A DNA stretch of 64,000 nucleotides from Obrimoposthia wandeli. Lineage: Eukaryota. The notes beneath the pieces are model-generated. The model made no database searches. It was not told the origin of the DNA and saw only the letters and a list, made by a program, of their open reading frames with translations. The first letter of the stretch is position 1; every line of letters starts with the position of its first letter. A program made the position numbers and the translations under genes. The DNA lies in NCBI GenBank assembly GCA_977020255.1, contig CDROCS010002357.1, forward strand, positions 1 through 64,000, read 5' to 3'. Shown in pieces: positions 35,653-44,824 of this stretch.

Positions 35653-35662
35653 AACTAAAAAT

Positions 35663-36944
35663 CACTAGTGTCCGGCTTAAAAAAGATGTGAAGCTATAGA
35701 GCTTTAACCACGGGGATTACAGTAAAATAGTGTTAACTAGACAGCTATTTTCCAAACCTGAGGTTAAGCGTGAAACATTCTAACAGCATTTTCAATCAAC
35801 TTTTAAAATTTATTCCCCGTCATACTTTTCAAAAAGTGGTTGATCGACATAACGGCGATTACCGGACGCGCACTCTTTCATGCTGGGATCAATTGGTTGT
35901 TCTGCTCTTTGCGCAGCTTAATAGCCAGACTTCATTAAGAGCAATTGAAACGACCTTTAACAGCCAAAGATCTAAACTTTATCACTTAGGCACAAGCCCT
36001 ATTAGCCGCTCATCTTTATCGGATGCTAACGGTAACCGGCCAACTGAAATTTTCAGTGAAACGTTCTATTATTTGCTCAATAAAGTGCGTTCAAAACTTC
36101 CTCAAGTTGATACTAGCCAGATGATAAGGTTGATTGACTCGACCACGATTGATTTGAATCTTAATCAGTTTAAGTGGGCAACGTTTCGTTCAAAGAAGGC
36201 CGGGATAAAGCTGCATACCGTGTATGACCCTACTGCAGCAGTCCCTGTATACTTTTCTTTAACTGAAGCCAAAACTAACGATGCTAAAGAATTGAATAAT
36301 TTACCGATGATGTCAAATACGACCTATGTTGTTGATCGAGCATATAATAATTACAGCTGGTTTTATTCTCTGGATCAGGATAACTCTAGGTTTGTCGGTC
36401 GAATGAAGACAAACACTTGTTATAAAGTGGTGAAAACAAGGGCTTCTATTGGTATGGGGGTCGTTGCAGATGAAATTATCCGCCTAAGCAGTGCCAAAGG
36501 AAAGAAGGATTGCCCAATTGATTTACGCCGTGTCAGCTTCGTTCGAGAAGAAGATCAAAAAGAGCTCGTATTTATCACCAATGATTTATCGCGTTCAGCG
36601 GTTGAGATCGCTGCATTATATAAACAGCGTTGGGAAATAGAGCTGTTCTTTAAATGGATCAAACAGAACCTCAAGATAAAGCGCTTTATCAGCCAAAATA
36701 GAAACGGGGTGATGATTCAGGTCTTGGTAGCACTCATCTCTTACCTGCTTTTAAAGCTGACGCAGTTAACCCATTTAAGTAAGCAAACACTCTATCAGAT
36801 CTGTCTAATAATCGGTGCAAATTTGATGGAACGTAGAGACATAATGGAGCTTCTAAATCCCTGCTCTGAACGGCTAAAATTAGACAAAAAAAGCGTGGAA
36901 CATAGGCAATATGATTTATTAAAATACTTAACCGGACACTAGTG
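35663..36944 (+). mobile_element. IS4-family insertion sequence (1282 bp)
   Basis: Perfect 13-bp TIR CACTAGTGTCCGG; 9-bp TSD ACTAAAAAT at 35654-35662 and 36945-36953. Confidence 0.95.
35770..36942 (+). CDS. IS4-family DDE transposase
   Basis: IDSTTI, VVDRAY, YKQRWEIELFFKWIK (YREK motif). Stop codon lies inside the right TIR. Confidence 0.95.
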   Translation: MKHSNSIFNQLLKFIPRHTFQKVVDRHNGDYRTRTLSCWDQLVVLLFAQLNSQTSLRAIETTFNSQRSKLYHLGTSPISRSSLSDANGNRPTEIFSETFYYLLNKVRSKLPQVDTSQMIRLIDSTTIDLNLNQFKWATFRSKKAGIKLHTVYDPTAAVPVYFSLTEAKTNDAKELNNLPMMSNTTYVVDRAYNNYSWFYSLDQDNSRFVGRMKTNTCYKVVKTRASIGMGVVADEIIRLSSAKGKKDCPIDLRRVSFVREEDQKELVFITNDLSRSAVEIAALYKQRWEIELFFKWIKQNLKIKRFISQNRNGVMIQVLVALISYLLLKLTQLTHLSKQTLYQICLIIGANLMERRDIMELLNPCSERLKLDKKSVEHRQYDLLKYLTGH

Positions 36945-37949
36945 ACTAAAAATAATCAATTATTAGAAGAGTGGTAAGAACTGGTAAATATGCTTTACTT
37001 AGTATTAATAAATAAAAACGTTAGTAGTAGTGTAAAGATATTTTTATAGCTAACAAAATACTTAGCTGCAAAACTGGTTTAATAATAGACAATATGTGAA
37101 TCTATTGATATTTACATTCAGGGCGGGTCGCTAAGGGTTGTATAGCTTGGCAGAAGAAACTTTACACATTAAGGTTCTTGCTAGACTTTATGATTAACAG
37201 CCCAGCTAATGGCCGCAGACGCTTGAGTTTTGACGGTTAGATGTGGATTAAACAGCGAAGATGTTAGGAAGCCAATAGAAATGTTACTTCTCAGCTTTTG
37301 CCTTTAATGAGACAAGCTAAAAGCCGTGAATGTTGGTTGGTACGTTTAAAGTCGACTTTCACTTGCTGAAATCTGAATGTTTTTGTTCAAGCAGGTTAAT
37401 GAGCACTTGTATCGAACTGGAATGATTTTATTTAGATTACTAAATTTCACAATGAGAATTTTAACTTCAGAGCTGGATTATAGATTTAACGCAGTAATCT
37501 TTATCGAGCACCCATAGCAAAAGTTTACCTTTAAAAAAGCCTCGCCATTCATCATTATCAGCGATAAACTGAGGCTATATTTATGCAGTGATTCTAGAGT
37601 AATTTAGATTCTATTAATTTAGTTCTTTTTTGACCTGCACAATGACAACAGCTACCTCTAGAAGTAAAAAACTCAGTGAGGGGTCAATTCTTTTGAGGAT
37701 TAAAAGATTTGGATATTGGCAGGAGTCGTTACCGATTAAATAAGTAAGCTAACTAGTTTATAGACATCATAATTTGATAAATACTCCTAGAGTGCACGTT
37801 ATAAATTAATCAATAAGGATTAATAACTAAGTTAGAACAATAAAATCAGTGTTATAGATCAGTACTTCTTCCTTGGTAGTTAGTTTCGAAAAGGTTAGTG
37901 ATATGCCAGGTCAGTTGAAAGTTGTTAAAACAGGTAATAAGGGGCTCTA

Positions 37950-38453
37950 ATGTATAAGATAATATTGTTAATGATTTTTACATTATCTTTCTCAGTGAAG
38001 GTGCTGTCCGCAGATGAGCCCGAGTCAGTGCAAGGATTAGCAATTCTCACAGTATTGGGGGATTTTCAGAAAAATACCAATGGGCTTGGTGTGAAATTTG
38101 ATCGCAAGATGCTGATGTCTTTTAAGCAGGTAACTATAAGTACTAACACACCTTGGACAACTGGGGTAAATAACTTTCAAGGCCCGACTATTGAAGATGT
38201 TCTAAATTCTTTGGGAGCTAATGGCAAAGAGTTAATAGCCACGGCACTTAATGGGTACAAAATATCAATTCCAATGAGTGACATCAAAAAATACCCCGTT
38301 ATTATCGCTTTAAAAAGAAATGGCTTAGTGTTAAGTGTTCGCCAAAAGGGTCCAGGATGGGTGATTTACCCTTGGGATAAATACCAAGAATTAAGTGCTA
38401 CTGTTTATTACACCCGATCAATATGGCAATTAAAATCATTAGAAGTGCGTTGA
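37950..38453 (+). CDS. secreted SUOX-fold (molybdopterin-oxidoreductase-like) protein, PruR-like
   Basis: Signal peptide; motifs TPWT, ALNGY, KGPGWVIYP, SIWQL; no cysteine, so no canonical Mo-ligating Cys; stop lies 1 bp before the kinase start. Confidence 0.75.
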   Translation: MYKIILLMIFTLSFSVKVLSADEPESVQGLAILTVLGDFQKNTNGLGVKFDRKMLMSFKQVTISTNTPWTTGVNNFQGPTIEDVLNSLGANGKELIATALNGYKISIPMSDIKKYPVIIALKRNGLVLSVRQKGPGWVIYPWDKYQELSATVYYTRSIWQLKSLEVR

Positions 38454-38454
38454 A

Positions 38455-41400
38455 TTGCTGTTAGCAAATAATGTGTTTAAACGAATGAAAATTGTTTATC
38501 TCATTTGTGCTTTGATGATTTTAATAACACTGACAGCGCTGGTGTTTGATTTGTTTAAGCTTCAGCAACTTCAAGGAGTTCAAAAGAGGGATGCTAAAGT
38601 TAGCTTGGTATGGTTCCTTACCCAAACAGATCGAGAATCTATAACTTTTCTACAGGATGTTAGTGATTTTTATATCGAAGACAGCAGCCTTTCGAAGCAA
38701 AAGATGCTCACTAGTTTTGATATTTTATGGAGCCGCTTTGACAGTAGTTTAAATGGGCAAATGGAATTTCTAATAAAATCTATCAAGTCAGGCCCAGAAA
38801 TCATTACTGAAATACGCCAATCATTACAGAAATTAGATGATCTAGTACAGTTTTTTGAACCAGGAAATAAGCACAGCTTTCTTGAAATTAACCATTTAAT
38901 GAAAAAAAACTTGCAGCGTTCATACTCCCTAGCTATCAATGCATTGCAAGTACGTCAGCAAGAAAGAAATAATAGATTAGATGCCATCAATGGCTTGTAT
39001 ATACACTTACTATTTACCCTCTTTGCGCTACTTTCATGTGTAGGGATTGCAATTGGCTTATTTCTAAAAAGGAGTAAAGAGCTAAAACATAAAAGTGCTA
39101 TTTTTGAATTGCGTGTCCAAGAGCGTACAGAGCAGCTTAAGCTCAGTAATGAATCCTTATTGGTTGAAGTTCAAGTACGAAAACAAGCTGATTATAGAGC
39201 GCAACAGCTAATTTCTGCCTTTGATCAATCTAACGAAGTGGTTTTTATATTGGATGTGCACAATAATTTTATTTTTTTTAATGAAAGCTTTTTAAGAGTC
39301 AATCCTTTAATCAAGAACTTAATTAAAATAGGAAGTAGTTTTGAAGATTACTTACACTCAGCTGCTACGCAAAATACTGATTTAAGTCACCTAGAAAAAC
39401 TACAATGGAGTGAGCGCTGGTTAGAAGGGTTAGATAGGTCAGATAGTAATTTTGAAGTTTCTTTTGTGAATAGCGTGCAGTTTATTTTTAATATCGATAG
39501 ATTAGATGACGGCTGTGTTATTTCCATAGGCGCTGATATCAGCGCATTAAAAGAAACCCAGAAAGCATTAGAGCTGAGTGAAAGTCGCTTTAGAAACTTT
39601 GCGTTGATTGGTGCTGATTGGTATTGGGAAATGGATCAAGCTTTAGCGCTTACTTTTTTAGCAGGAGGTGTAGAAAGTGTTTCTGGCTATCCACCTATCT
39701 TTTTCGTGGGAAAAAGTCGTGAAGAAGCTTACGGGATAGTTGGTCATGCTAACAAGCGCTCACTGCAGCTATTCTGGGATAAAACAGATAACAGAGAGTT
39801 CTTTCATGAATATGAGACTAAGTGGAAGAGAAAAGATGGCCAAATAGTTACTATCAGCCTCTCAGGAGAACCTAGATACAATGATGCCGGAGATTTTATA
39901 GGCTATATAGGAGCGGGTAGAGATGTAACAGCTCGTTGTTTAGTCGAAGAGCGAGATATGCGTTTATTGACGGCAATTAACAGCCTAAATTTAATGATCA
40001 GTATTTACGACAGTGCTGATAAACTTGTCTTTTATAATCAGGAGTTCGATGATTTCAAAAATAAACTCAATGCTGATTTAGAGATAGGCGTGGGGTTTAA
40101 TACAATTTGGCAATTGTCTTGTGACTACTATGCACAGGAGTTTGGTTTTGATGCTAATTACTGGTATAGCGCAAGATTATCAGCTCACAGAAAACCTGTG
40201 AATAATTTTGTGCTGCCGATAGGAAGTGATAAATACCTAAATGTCTTTGAGCAAATGCTTGATGATGGTGGAGTAATAATCGTCAGTACAGATATCTCTT
40301 CAAGCAAGAAAGCAGAGCAAGAAATTTACCAACTACGAAGTTACTTAGCAAATATAATCGATTCAATGTCTTCTATTTTGATAGCAGTAGATGCTCAATG
40401 CCGTGTTATTCAATGGAATATAGCTGCACAAAATGAAACGCAAATAAGTTTTAATCAAGCTTACCAACAGCAATTAGTCTCTGTCTTTCCGCGATTAAAA
40501 ATTGAACTTGATAATGTCAAAGATGCTATTACTAAAGGAAAAGAAACATCACAATTAAAACGTTTATTTATTAAAGAAGGTAACGCTCATTATGAAGATA
40601 TCATTATTTACCCTTTAATTAGGGGGGAAGAGGCTGGGGCTGTTATTCGTTTAGATAATGTAACAGATCAAGTATTGATATCTGAAGTGATGATCCAATC
40701 AGAAAAAATGCTTTCAGTGGGAGGGCTCGCTGCAGGAATGGCACACGAAATTAATAATCCATTAGCAGGAATGATGCAAACTGCTAACGTTATGACCAAC
40801 AGACTTTGCGATCTTCACATTCAAGCGAATATTGACGCTGCAAATGATGCGGGTATTAGCATCGAAGCTGTTGAACAGTATATGCAGCAACGCGGGATAT
40901 TAAGAATGTTGCACAATATATCGGAATCGGGCAAAAGGGTTGCCATTATTGTGGAAAATATGTTGGATTTCTCTCGTCAAAATGGTGCTATAGCAAGTGA
41001 ACAAAACCTAGCTGAATTATTAGATAAAGCGCTTGAATTATCGGCCACGGATCATAACCTTAAATCCAATTACGACTTTAGAACTATCAAAATTATTAAG
41101 GAATATGAAGAATTTTTACCACTTATTATGTGTGAGTCGGGAAAAATTCAGCAAGTATTTCTTAATATACTTAGAAATGCAGCGCAAGCTATGCAAGAAG
41201 CTTGCGTTGAATGTCCAACGATTATCTTGCGACTCAATTTTGATGAAGCTATACAGCAAGCGATTATCGAAATAGAAGATAATGGACCAGGAATAGCTGA
41301 CGACATAAAACTTCGAGTATTTGAACCTTTCTTTTCAACCAAGAAAGTAGGGCTTGGTACAGGTTTAGGTCTGAGTGTTTCGTATTTCATCATTACCGAA

Positions 41401-41526
41401 AATCACGATGGAAAGTTAAGGGTTGATTCAGTTTTAGGAGAATTCACTAGGTTTAGAATTATGTTACCTAGAATGGGTTTAGATAGTGTCCAAACAACAT
41501 TAGACTACATTCGAACGGTTGAATAA
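38455..41526 (+). CDS. membrane sensor histidine kinase with periplasmic helical domain and ~4 PAS domains
   Basis: Two TM helices flanking ~140 aa containing WFLTQTDRE and FDILWSR; four PAS-like repeats; H-box GMAHEINNPL; N, G1, F, G2 boxes. Confidence 0.9.
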   Translation: MLLANNVFKRMKIVYLICALMILITLTALVFDLFKLQQLQGVQKRDAKVSLVWFLTQTDRESITFLQDVSDFYIEDSSLSKQKMLTSFDILWSRFDSSLNGQMEFLIKSIKSGPEIITEIRQSLQKLDDLVQFFEPGNKHSFLEINHLMKKNLQRSYSLAINALQVRQQERNNRLDAINGLYIHLLFTLFALLSCVGIAIGLFLKRSKELKHKSAIFELRVQERTEQLKLSNESLLVEVQVRKQADYRAQQLISAFDQSNEVVFILDVHNNFIFFNESFLRVNPLIKNLIKIGSSFEDYLHSAATQNTDLSHLEKLQWSERWLEGLDRSDSNFEVSFVNSVQFIFNIDRLDDGCVISIGADISALKETQKALELSESRFRNFALIGADWYWEMDQALALTFLAGGVESVSGYPPIFFVGKSREEAYGIVGHANKRSLQLFWDKTDNREFFHEYETKWKRKDGQIVTISLSGEPRYNDAGDFIGYIGAGRDVTARCLVEERDMRLLTAINSLNLMISIYDSADKLVFYNQEFDDFKNKLNADLEIGVGFNTIWQLSCDYYAQEFGFDANYWYSARLSAHRKPVNNFVLPIGSDKYLNVFEQMLDDGGVIIVSTDISSSKKAEQEIYQLRSYLANIIDSMSSILIAVDAQCRVIQWNIAAQNETQISFNQAYQQQLVSVFPRLKIELDNVKDAITKGKETSQLKRLFIKEGNAHYEDIIIYPLIRGEEAGAVIRLDNVTDQVLISEVMIQSEKMLSVGGLAAGMAHEINNPLAGMMQTANVMTNRLCDLHIQANIDAANDAGISIEAVEQYMQQRGILRMLHNISESGKRVAIIVENMLDFSRQNGAIASEQNLAELLDKALELSATDHNLKSNYDFRTIKIIKEYEEFLPLIMCESGKIQQVFLNILRNAAQAMQEACVECPTIILRLNFDEAIQQAIIEIEDNGPGIADDIKLRVFEPFFSTKKVGLGTGLGLSVSYFIITENHDGKLRVDSVLGEFTRFRIMLPRMGLDSVQTTLDYIRTVE

Positions 41527-41575: not shown

Positions 41576-42892
41576 TTGTTGCAAAAAAAAAGAGCCCAAA
41601 CCATTTTAGTCATAGAAGATGAGGAAATAATTAGGGATAGTTTTTGTGACACTCTTGAAGATTTAGGCTATCAAGTCATCGATGCTGCGAATGGACAAAT
41701 AGGTTTAGATGTTGCTTTAGTAAATAAACCCGATCTTATTATAACGGATTTGAGAATGCCGTTAATGGGAGGCATTGAGTTTCTGGAAAAATGCACCCTT
41801 GTATTACCTCATACTCCTATCATTGTTATCTCGGGTGCAGGGTTAATGGGGGACGTTGTTAATGCGCTACATTTAGGTGCTTTTGATTATCTTACAAAGC
41901 CTATTAGGGACCCCGATTTACTCAAGGCTACGGTTTCCAGAGCTTTAGAGCAAGTTCGATTAAGGCAAGAAAATGCTTTATACCAGCAGTCTTTGGAAGA
42001 TTTAGTAGAGCAGCGTACAACAGAGTTAAGTATCATTAATGCTGAATTGGAATTACACCAGCAGGATTTAGAGCACCTAGTAAACAAACGTACTCAAGAA
42101 TTAGAAGAAGTAATTGAAAATCTCAAAAACACGCAACAGCAATTAATTGATTCAGCCAAAATGGCCTCTCTAGGTCGCTTAGTTGCAGGAGTATCACATG
42201 AGTTAAATACTCCACTAGGTATTTGCTTAACATTTATTTCCAGTTTGGGTCAAAAAATAAATAGTTTTGAAAAGGATTTTGTAAAAGGCGTGCTGCGCAG
42301 AGAAGATTTTGAGAATTTTCTATATTCAGCTCAAGAGTCTAGCGCAATCGTGATTAATAATTTAACTCAAGTTTCTGAGTTAGTTAAAAATTTCAAAATG
42401 GTTTCTGTAGATGTAAGCAGTGATATGCGTCGAAAATTTGATTTGGTGAGCTATTTTAACAATGTCATCAATAGCTTAAAACCTGAATTGTTTGACACTC
42501 AAGTATCTATAGTTTTTTCTCCTAAATACCAATATATGATTGATTCATACCCTGGATTATTCTCCCAAATATTAACCAATTTAGTCATGAATTCTGTCAC
42601 GCATGGATTTCCTAAGCATTTTAAAGGTCATATTAAGGTAGAGCTATATTATGAGGAGGATTTATTAGTTATTTCATATAAGGATAATGGTTGTGGTATT
42701 AGTGATGAAGTAAAAGCGAAAATGTATGAGCCTTTTTTCACCACCGCTAGAGGGACAGGTGGCAGTGGTTTAGGTTTAAATATCTTATACAATTTAGTTG
42801 TTAATAATTTATCAGGTAAAGTTGATTGTTATAGTAATATCAATGAAGGTGCAGAGTTTTTGATTAAACTGCCTATGTCAGTTAAAGATTAG
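41576..42892 (+). CDS. hybrid receiver-domain histidine kinase
   Basis: REC with IEDE, DLIITDLRMP, YLTKP; coiled coil; H-box GVSHELNTPLG; DNGCG, FFTT, GSGLGL. Confidence 0.9.
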   Translation: MLQKKRAQTILVIEDEEIIRDSFCDTLEDLGYQVIDAANGQIGLDVALVNKPDLIITDLRMPLMGGIEFLEKCTLVLPHTPIIVISGAGLMGDVVNALHLGAFDYLTKPIRDPDLLKATVSRALEQVRLRQENALYQQSLEDLVEQRTTELSIINAELELHQQDLEHLVNKRTQELEEVIENLKNTQQQLIDSAKMASLGRLVAGVSHELNTPLGICLTFISSLGQKINSFEKDFVKGVLRREDFENFLYSAQESSAIVINNLTQVSELVKNFKMVSVDVSSDMRRKFDLVSYFNNVINSLKPELFDTQVSIVFSPKYQYMIDSYPGLFSQILTNLVMNSVTHGFPKHFKGHIKVELYYEEDLLVISYKDNGCGISDEVKAKMYEPFFTTARGTGGSGLGLNILYNLVVNNLSGKVDCYSNINEGAEFLIKLPMSVKD

Positions 42893-43216
42893 ATTTTTGT
42901 TTATATTATATACATGTTTCATAGAATCTCTTATGTAATGTGATTTATTAAGAGTATACAAAGAAAGTGCTCGTTTAAACCGGCGGGTATTTTTAGAGCA
43001 ATGGCTAATGACTCCTTTGAAACTGAATAAAAATGTTGGATAATCAATTTAGTACTTTATATATAAAACTTGGCTTAACGATTATTTTATCGACTTCATA
43101 CCAGTATGTTCTTCTCATTGATAATCAAACATCGCTTATTCATAAAACAATGAAGACTAACAGTTTTTAAAGTATTGCCATTACCTACATTATTAATTTT
43201 AACTAGGTTAGTTACT

Positions 43217-44824
43217 TTGTCAAAAATAGATTTTTCCAATAAAGATGCGTTAGTAATAGATTCCAGTAGTTTAATGCGCACGACGACAATTACTATGCTA
43301 ACAACGCTAGGTTTTAGGCGCGTTAAAGGGTCAAATACTTCAGCACGTGCTTTAGAGTTAGTTCAGGAAGGCGCTTACGATTTAGTTTTATTAGGGTACT
43401 CTGATCTTGAGCGCTTATCTGGGTTGCAACTACTAGAAGAAGCACGCTTTAAGGAACTTATTAAACCCACTGCTTGTTGGGGGTTTATGACCAACGATAA
43501 CTCACCAGAAGTTGTATTACATGCGATGCAATGCAAACCTGACTTTTTAATTAGTAAACCTTTTAGTATTGGTCAGTTACTAAATCGCTTACAAAGTGTT
43601 TTGTTACAAAAGCAATTAGTAAAACCTATCAATCAAGCGCTAGATAGTGGTAACTTTAGCCGTGCTTTAGAGTTTTGTGACTTTGCAATTGAAAAAAATA
43701 TTTCTACGGTCGCTGTTCAACAAATAAAAGCCGATTTGTTGTTGCTCACACAAAATTATGCTGAAGCGCTGGTTTTATTAAATGAACTAGCCGGTACTGC
43801 TCCAAATAATAGTATTGATTTAAAAGTATGTGAAGCTTTGATTGGTGCGGGTAAAAAGGATGATGCACTTTCAAAGCTTGATGATTTAATTAGCAGTTCG
43901 CCGCTATTAATTAAAGCTTATGATTTAAAAGCGCAGCTTCATGAAGATAAAGGCCAAACTGAAAAATCAGCTAATGTGTTATTTCAAGCGGTAAGCATCA
44001 GCTCACTAGGGATTAACAGAAATCTAAAACTAGGTAAGTTGGCTTTAACAACTGGCAAGTTGGATATGGCGGAAAATGTCTACAAGCGTACCATCCAGTT
44101 GAACAATGGTAGTTGCTTTCGCACACCTGAGCCATATTTCGGTTTAGCAAATATCAGACGTGAAGTATTGAAAAGTAGTGAAGATTCGTTAGATACTGAG
44201 CAACAAATTAAAACTATATTGAGCGAAGCACAAAACAGTTTTCCGGATAATCCTGAGCTAAAAATTCAAGTTGCCTTGTTTAATAGTCAATTACAACAAG
44301 ATTTGAACAATTCAGAAAATGCACAGCAATTTTTAGAGCAAGCAGAGAAAATTATCCTAGATAACAATATCACTGAAAATATAGAGTACTTCAAACATTC
44401 AGCTTTAATGAAGACACCTGATACGATAGCGAATAAAGATGAACTTGCAACTAAACAATCAGTTGTTCAAAACCAACCTGAAATGAGTAATAAAGTAAAT
44501 TTACAAGGTATAAAACAGTACTTAGCAAATAATCGAGCTAAAGCTGTAAAGTATTTCACCATGTCTTTGGAGCTAGATAGTGAAAACGGTTCAGCACTGT
44601 TAAATTTGGCACAAATCTATTTAGAATCTCTACATAATGATAAAGCAGAATATCAGAAATCTCTGAAAATGATTAAAAGGTATTTAGCTTTAGTGGAAAA
44701 TATGGATAAAGATAGCGCACAGCAACAGCGATATGCTGAATTAACGAGGTATTACGCATTTGGTTTAGATAAGGCTAGTATCGTTAATATACCTAATGGG
44801 TCGTTGGGTAGTTTATTAAGATAA
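43217..44824 (+). CDS. atypical receiver domain + TPR-repeat protein
   Basis: REC-like N-terminus (ALVIDSS...DLVLLGY...SKPF) followed by helical TPR-like repeats. TTG start at MSKIDF. Confidence 0.78.
   Translation: MSKIDFSNKDALVIDSSSLMRTTTITMLTTLGFRRVKGSNTSARALELVQEGAYDLVLLGYSDLERLSGLQLLEEARFKELIKPTACWGFMTNDNSPEVVLHAMQCKPDFLISKPFSIGQLLNRLQSVLLQKQLVKPINQALDSGNFSRALEFCDFAIEKNISTVAVQQIKADLLLLTQNYAEALVLLNELAGTAPNNSIDLKVCEALIGAGKKDDALSKLDDLISSSPLLIKAYDLKAQLHEDKGQTEKSANVLFQAVSISSLGINRNLKLGKLALTTGKLDMAENVYKRTIQLNNGSCFRTPEPYFGLANIRREVLKSSEDSLDTEQQIKTILSEAQNSFPDNPELKIQVALFNSQLQQDLNNSENAQQFLEQAEKIILDNNITENIEYFKHSALMKTPDTIANKDELATKQSVVQNQPEMSNKVNLQGIKQYLANNRAKAVKYFTMSLELDSENGSALLNLAQIYLESLHNDKAEYQKSLKMIKRYLALVENMDKDSAQQQRYAELTRYYAFGLDKASIVNIPNGSLGSLLR

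Follow-up and report, generated by a model that had tools for sequence, protein, structure and literature searches.

The 64,000-nucleotide stretch of DNA that we analyzed (the window; contig CDROCS010002357.1 of the Obrimoposthia wandeli assembly GCA_977020255.1) encodes, at positions 37950 to 41526, a homolog of the periplasmic protein PruR followed directly by a histidine kinase with a DcpA-type periplasmic sensor domain. This combination of PruR, a DcpA-type periplasmic domain and a two-component sensor kinase is the arrangement termed PruR-DTB. Greenwich et al. (PNAS 2024, PMC11194511) defined it from bioinformatic analysis, a review of 2026 (PMC13259868) takes it up again, and it makes up 23% of ~5,600 pruR-linked pairs and 29% of the unique sequences (PMC11194511). 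The kinases of the class often possess PAS and/or REC domains and are often encoded near response-regulator genes (PMC11194511), and up to four PruR systems per genome have been published.

The initial annotation of this locus had proposed that the input module of the PruR-DcpA system of Agrobacterium tumefaciens is here wired to a kinase instead of a GGDEF-EAL output. The assignment of a PruR, a DcpA-type sensor and a four-PAS kinase is supported by sequence, structure and profile comparisons, but the novelty that it implied does not hold, since the coupling of the DcpA-type input to a kinase was published in 2024, and the pair in the window adds a further, somewhat divergent member to the published class. 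The identity of both proteins is evident from their sequences, folds and motifs, the catalytic motifs are intact, and the gene order is conserved among relatives. We consider it likely that the locus functions as a two-component input module of the PruR-DTB type, in which pterin-bound PruR would regulate the kinase and the kinase would relay to an adjoining protein with REC, HisKA and HATPase domains (the REC-kinase). The features of the gene pair, with the evidence used for each where it is of a particular kind, are as follows.

37950..38453, plus strand: pruR homolog, 167 residues, secreted pterin-binding type with a truncated sulfite oxidase (SUOX)-type fold (PDB matches, AlphaFold model, Foldseek, residue conservation)
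37950..38012, plus strand: probable signal peptide, residues ~1-21, ending VLSA before DEPE (read from sequence only)
38455..41526, plus strand: sensor histidine kinase, 1023 residues, comprising a first transmembrane segment, the DcpA-type periplasmic domain, a second transmembrane segment, four PAS-like segments, HisKA and HATPase
38491-38547, plus strand: first transmembrane segment, residues 13-31 (hydropathy)
38548..39006, plus strand: DcpA-type periplasmic helical sensor domain, residues ~32-184 (hydropathy, AlphaFold model, hhalign)
38611..38637, plus strand: WX7E motif WFLTQTDRE, W53-x3-Q57-x3-E61 (column counts; published invariant pair)
38716..38736, plus strand: second sensor motif FDILWSR, F88-R94, with the family pattern [FY][DE]I[LF]x[SG]R (column counts)
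39007-39063, plus strand: second transmembrane segment, residues 185-203 (hydropathy)
39232..40674, plus strand: four cytoplasmic PAS-like segments, residues ~260-369, 401-494, 508-622 and 631-740 (Pfam)
40723..41472, plus strand: kinase core, HisKA (residues 757-842) with the H-box HEINNP (H764) and HATPase_c (residues 897-1006) (Pfam, motifs)

The PruR homolog and its fold

The open reading frame (ORF) at 37950-38453, which is preceded by an AAGGGG ribosome-binding site 6 nucleotides from its ATG, encodes a PruR homolog. Its product had been described in the initial annotation as a secreted SUOX-fold protein that lacks cysteine and carries four sequence motifs, and all of these features are present: there are no cysteines among the 167 residues, and TPWT, ALNGY, KGPGWVIYP and SIWQL occupy residues 67-70, 99-103, 133-141 and 157-161, respectively. 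By eye the N-terminus, with MYK, a hydrophobic run and then VLSA before DE, looks like a signal peptide; residues 1-27 have a predicted local distance difference test score (pLDDT) below 50 in our structural model, and the alignment to the crystallized PruR chains begins at residue 27.

When all PDB sequences were searched, the sole real matches of the protein were four structures designated "pterin binding protein", from A. tumefaciens (7KOS/7KOU, E 3.5e-31), K. pneumoniae (7RKB, E 2.5e-28), V. cholerae (7KP2, E 3.8e-22) and V. vulnificus (7KOM, E 6.8e-16). An AlphaFold (AF2) model built on 20 relatives (pLDDT 86.5) was compared by Foldseek with known structures, and gave TM-scores of 0.88-0.92 with root-mean-square deviations (rmsd) of 1.2-1.8 Å across 7KOS, 7KOU, 7RKB, 7KP2 and 7KOM, and of 0.90-0.92 with rmsd of 1.2-1.3 Å against the four solved PruRs; its identity to A. 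tumefaciens PruR in this comparison is 41-42%. Alignment with PruR, which the initial annotation had named as a check on its proposal, therefore matches the PruR structures in both sequence and fold.

PruR is defined by its secretion signal and truncated SUOX fold, by a Pro-Trp motif whose tryptophan, W70, takes the place of the Mo-ligating cysteine, and by the pterin contacts N102, Y104 and W160, whose interaction with the pterin ring was shown in A. tumefaciens by mutagenesis and crystallography (PMC11194511). In the window protein P68-W69 aligns with this PW motif, placing W69 at the position of the Mo-ligating cysteine, and N101, Y103 and W159 align with N102, Y104 and W160. Among the 20 relatives W159 is invariant, and W69, N101 and Y103 are each found in at least 90%. 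By analogy with the A. tumefaciens PruR-DcpA system, the protein may bind and sense a pterin.

The molybdenum cofactor (Moco)-binding domain of sulfite oxidase and of YedY (MsrP) has the same basic fold as the PruR homolog (Foldseek probability 1.0), and one can ask whether the small protein is a catalytic oxidoreductase of this kind whose adjacency to a kinase gene is incidental. Two annotations favor such a reading: the only Pfam match is Oxidored_molyb, at a borderline 24.8 bits (cut-off 24), and one relative bears the name "molybdopterin-dependent oxidoreductase". Other relatives are named "hypothetical protein" and a scan of NCBIfam returned no matching model, so that mislabeling of the gene by annotation pipelines, as had been anticipated, is indeed seen. 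We nevertheless regard the enzyme reading as extremely improbable, and rule out a catalytic Moco enzyme. Sulfite oxidase and YedY carry their Mo-coordinating cysteine on an extended hairpin, whereas the PruR homolog has no cysteine at all, a tryptophan at the ligand position, and within its 167 residues a truncated hairpin and the truncated cleft of PruR. Its model, moreover, is far nearer to the PruRs than to the catalytic sulfite oxidases (target-normalized TM-scores 0.23-0.31, or 0.23-0.41 with YedY included), and in nearly all loci the gene is syntenic with one for a DcpA-type sensor. The gene is better named a PruR-type pterin-binding protein than a molybdopterin oxidoreductase.

The DcpA-type sensor and the kinase core

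The pruR homolog ends at 38453 and the kinase ORF begins with a TTG at 38455, leaving the single nucleotide between them that had been reported initially; the true start may instead be a GTG at 38473 or an ATG at 38485, both in frame, and the gap is thus 1-31 nucleotides. Hydropathy peaks, located by a crude window method, delimit two transmembrane segments separated by a loop of ~150 residues, where ~138-150 are expected for a DcpA-type domain, and the AlphaFold model of this loop is an all-helical bundle (pLDDT 93.9). The architecture first described, a helical periplasmic domain of ~140 residues between two transmembrane segments, is therefore borne out, and no Pfam model covers the domain.

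Two motifs stand out within it. The WX7E motif at residues 53-61 corresponds to the residue pair published as invariant in DcpA-type domains (PMC11194511), and it aligns with the same motif in PruR-linked GGDEF-EAL proteins; across 55 PruR-adjacent partner proteins W53 is conserved in 44, Q57 in 53 and E61 in 49. The second motif had been given in the initial annotation as D-x-x-W-S-R, and it is indeed conserved, in the broader form [FY][DE]I[LF]x[SG]R, its R94 being present in 55/55 partners, I90 in 51/55 and S93 in 42/55 (glycine in 8), but its tryptophan is not, W92 being present in just 9/55.

We compared the N-terminal region of the kinase and its close relatives (the window clade, described below) with that of other PruR-linked groups by profile-profile alignment in hhalign, with reversed profiles as the control. 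The window-clade sensor matched that of 15 GGDEF-EAL partners with a probability of 96.6 and an E-value of 5.8e-10 over 188 columns, these partners being from related Alphaproteobacteria and A. tumefaciens DcpA itself being absent from the set; it matched 37 other kinase partners with an E-value of 2.2e-18, and the reversed profiles with E-values of 0.016-0.047 (0.047 for the reversed GGDEF-EAL control). On the strength of these profiles the sensor domain of the kinase is homologous to that of the PruR-linked GGDEF-EAL proteins, as its initial assignment to the DcpA type had supposed.

We know of no solved structure of a DcpA-type domain. The folds nearest to the sensor model are the helical bundles of QseE, GlrK, KinB and NarQ/NarX, matched only weakly (TM-scores ~0.5-0.6, best E 0.016-0.05), and among the matches are the accessory-protein/kinase complexes QseG-QseE and XylFII-LytS. 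Since NarQ and NarX bind their ligands directly, it could be proposed that the kinase bundle likewise senses a small ligand of its own, with PruR acting independently and being merely co-transcribed. We think this very unlikely, given that A. tumefaciens PruR cross-links to, and controls DcpA through, the homologous periplasmic domain (PMC11194511), that the window clade is recovered alike in the tree of PruR and in that of the sensor domain, and that the QseE-QseG and LytS-XylFII analogies are themselves pairs of an accessory protein and a kinase.

The cytoplasmic part begins with the four PAS domains listed initially, all of which are recovered by Pfam as PAS-like segments: the first (PAS_7, 25.0 bits) lies just below the cut-off of 27 but covers the full length of the model, the second is PAS_3 at 26.8 bits (cut-off 25.6), the third PAS_7 at 36.8 bits, and the fourth PAS at 30.3 bits within the full sequence and 19.8 on its own. 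They are followed by HisKA (30.3-38.1 bits) and HATPase_c (66.7-70.4 bits), and every box of the kinase core is present: HEINNP at 764, the N-box at 904, DNGPG (G1) at 942, FEPFF (F) at 956 and GLGTGL (G2) at 966. The HisKA match (residues 757-842; 40723-40980) spans 86 residues for 60 profile positions, and there are therefore ~26 extra residues in the dimerization and histidine phosphotransfer region after the H-box helix. The best NCBIfam match of the kinase is AtoS, at 181.7 bits and below the equivalog cut-off, with TorS at 66-68 bits. Neither Pfam matches nor motifs for GGDEF or EAL were found in the protein, which is not an ortholog of DcpA and has only the sensor domain in common with it.

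Partner census, the HEINNP clade and its gene neighborhood

To place the pair among its relatives, 80 genomic loci with PruR relatives were fetched, and 63 of these had a usable gene directly downstream; 10 loci without a credible partner, the result of a crude ORF picker, were left out of the census and the trees, and a further 7 had no complete downstream ORF in the fetched DNA. Pfam identifies 44 of the 63 partners as histidine kinases and 17 as GGDEF-EAL proteins, the other two being a SpoIIE phosphatase and a class III cyclase, and nearly all show the layout of two transmembrane segments ~145 residues apart with W-x7-E ~15-20 residues past the first. REC domains occur in 26 and Hpt domains in 15 of the 63.

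The two unusual outputs both come from metagenome-assembled genomes (MAGs). At L004:8459-10306, from a Rhodospirillaceae MAG, PruR is followed by a membrane-anchored sensor protein of the same layout with PAS and a SpoIIE/PP2C phosphatase, in which FDILWSR is kept but WX7E lacks its W and the Q within it; at L005:8420-10510, from an alphaproteobacterial MAG, the corresponding protein has two PAS domains and a class III adenylate/guanylate cyclase, and retains both WX7E and VVWSR. The texts of PMC11194511 and PMC13259868 name c-di-GMP (cyclic di-GMP) and kinase configurations only. A third locus, L061, from a bin labeled 'Candidatus Planktophila' (Actinomycetota), has its PruR-kinase pair inside a tight clade of Rhodobacterales (Paracoccaceae/Roseobacteraceae) with very short branches, and most likely reflects a contig placed in the wrong bin, not an actinobacterial PruR.

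The H-box separates the window kinase from the others. Outside the window clade, every kinase partner with a classified H-box (37-40 proteins, according to the subset taken) has HE[ILM]RTP, and among the sampled loci HEINNP is confined to the window kinase and five orthologs (L001, L002 and L081-L083). A database search returned ~20 full-length orthologs of the kinase (54-88% identity, ~1005-1019 residues) from Oceanospirillaceae-like marine bacteria, an Osedax symbiont among them, beyond which the matches fall sharply to proteins that have only the cytoplasmic part in common. In a PruR tree and in a sensor-domain tree, both built by a quick method from a sample biased to relatives of the query, the six HEINNP loci each time form one branch (99 in the Shimodaira-Hasegawa-like approximate likelihood ratio test, SH-aLRT), apart from 52 others. 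The HEINNP clade is a small separate branch of PruR-kinase pairs.

It is possible to go further and to see in these Oceanospirillaceae-like bacteria an independently diversified third PruR lineage, in which a co-evolving PruR and sensor were joined to a kinase of the AtoS/NtrB type with four PAS segments, which in turn drives a second kinase via the N-terminal receiver of the latter. We offer this tentatively and think it on the whole unlikely; if true, it would mean that extracellular pterin (redox) status gates a kinase-to-kinase cascade, in place of a c-di-GMP enzyme or the classical pairing of a kinase with its regulator.

The divergence of the clade also bears on the ligand. The PruR of the window clade might have drifted to a new specificity, so that the pair would still consist of a PruR-type accessory protein and its kinase but would respond to a non-pterin molecule, or to another pteridine or a flavin-like heterocycle. 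The separate long branch of the clade's PruR (SH-aLRT 99), its 41-42% identity to A. tumefaciens PruR and the divergence of the sensor domain would fit such a drift, but the PW motif and all three pterin-ring residues are conserved in the window protein and across the clade, and we judge a change of ligand distinctly improbable.

The gene order in the six clade loci is an amino-acid ABC (ATP-binding cassette) transporter, gnd in some, pruR, the kinase, the REC-kinase, a REC-TPR gene in some, and an rsmC-like methyltransferase on the opposite strand. The neighboring features in the window are as follows.

35662-36945: IS4-family element, with a 390-residue transposase (NCBIfam transpos_IS4_1, 269.7 bits) and 14-nucleotide perfect terminal inverted repeats
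41576..42892, plus strand: REC-HisKA-HATPase protein, 438 residues (Pfam; directly 3' of the kinase in 6/6 clade loci)
43175..44824, plus strand: REC-TPR protein, a 549-residue ORF whose true start is probably near 43217 (Pfam; 60% identity to the L002 homolog, with the match beginning at 43226)

The REC-kinase is 63-65% identical to its L001 and L002 homologs, and its receiver has the complete acidic pocket, the acceptor Asp, and the Ser and Lys. The REC-TPR gene, by comparison, is present in three of the five loci whose DNA reaches far enough to be informative (the window, L002 and L082) and missing in L001 and L081. Its receiver retains a single acidic-pocket Asp and the Lys, and the sequence past beta-3 reads LVLLGYSD in the window, LVLLGHST in L002 and LVIVGDDN in L082; because the conserved acceptor Asp is missing, the protein is probably a pseudo-receiver adaptor and an optional member of the cluster.

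Upstream, the IS4-family element is situated between the ATPase gene of the ABC transporter and pruR, 1 kb from the latter and separated from it by ~1 kb of AT-rich non-coding DNA (36946-37949), and it leaves the locus uninterrupted. In three of the six loci (L001, L002 and L082) gnd, for 6-phosphogluconate dehydrogenase, is found between the transporter and pruR. We considered whether the element had destroyed gnd in the window and rejected this: no gnd remnant was detected at that spot by tblastn, L081 and L083 also lack the gene, and its absence from the window is therefore incidental. Scans of the locus for promoters and terminators gave counts at or below shuffle expectation and were uninformative.

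Proposed mechanism and related systems

Taking the A. tumefaciens PruR-DcpA system and general two-component logic as the guide to pterin binding, to the contact of PruR with the kinase, to the direction of regulation and to the partner in phosphotransfer, we propose the following course of events. PruR would be exported to the periplasm, where a reduced pterin would be held between Y103 and W159, with a hydrogen bond from N101. Once liganded, PruR would dock on the kinase's helical periplasmic domain of DcpA type and shift the kinase/phosphatase balance of the cytoplasmic core, into which the four PAS-like domains could feed further inputs. The phosphoryl group would most likely pass to the receiver of the adjoining REC-kinase, giving a two-tier kinase relay with the final regulator encoded elsewhere.

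Several observations weigh against this proposal. The window-clade sensor is the most divergent in the sample, its E-values of 5.8e-10 and 2.2e-18 comparing with 6.7e-34 between the GGDEF-EAL partners and the other, HE[ILM]RTP kinase partners. The clade also has T64 (38644-38646) and S87 (38713-38715) at positions where Arg is found in 34/55 and 44/55 partners, respectively, and in 15/15 of those linked to GGDEF; given this divergence and these replacements, the PruR-binding surface of the clade may differ, with T64 and S87 as candidate docking-surface changes. The kinase core appears AtoS/NtrB-like and not TorS/BaeS-like, Pfam identified no DNA-binding response regulator in the cluster, and searches for sequencing runs that might contain transcripts of the locus matched the probable source DNA sample and one marine metagenome but no RNA run.

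The lack of a DNA-binding regulator in the cluster, together with the 49-nucleotide gap between the end of the kinase and the REC-kinase gene, is also what would be expected if PruR regulated the kinase but the phosphotransfer target were an orphan response regulator encoded elsewhere, the REC-kinase then belonging to another pathway or serving as a phosphate sink. Such an arrangement is conceivable but in our view doubtful: across kinases of 54-88% identity the REC-kinase gene is directly downstream in all six clade loci while gnd and REC-TPR come and go, and its receiver keeps all phospho-acceptor residues. We therefore retain transfer to the REC-kinase as the preferred route in the proposed module.

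A search of the literature returned no study in which a PruR-kinase pair was examined by experiment. The one system of this kind characterized experimentally, and the only one in which pterin-responsive PruR signaling has been demonstrated, is that of the A. tumefaciens c-di-GMP enzyme DcpA; the kinase-linked class is known from genome mining only. Being compact, with its catalytic motifs intact and a REC-kinase conserved downstream, the window locus is a specific candidate on which pterin control of a phosphorelay could first be tested biochemically.

The A. tumefaciens pair (Atu3496-Atu3495) resembles that in the window in the fold and pterin contacts of PruR, in the length and layout of the periplasmic domain, in the WX7E motif and in the adjacency of the two genes, and differs in its output, a GGDEF-EAL protein controlling c-di-GMP where the window has a kinase. 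The PruR-DTB class as a whole is closer still, with a cysteine-less secreted PruR encoded directly 5' of a histidine kinase that has PAS domains and a WX7E-bearing sensor between two transmembrane segments, and with a receiver gene adjoining. The typical kinases of our sample, however, have TorS/BaeS-like H-boxes, HE[ILM]RTP, and often carry REC and Hpt, whereas the window kinase has an AtoS/NtrB-like H-box, HEINNP, and four PAS-like segments and lacks REC and Hpt; it has instead a separate REC-kinase downstream, and its PruR and sensor fall on a separate branch. A more distant parallel is provided by TorT-TorS, QseG-QseE and XylFII-LytS, in each of which a periplasmic ligand-binding or accessory protein docks on the helical periplasmic sensor of a histidine kinase. 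The accessory proteins in these systems are unrelated to PruR, having substrate-binding-protein or lipoprotein folds rather than a SUOX fold, and because the fold matches of the sensor are weak (E >0.01), the likeness to these systems is one of analogy and not of membership.

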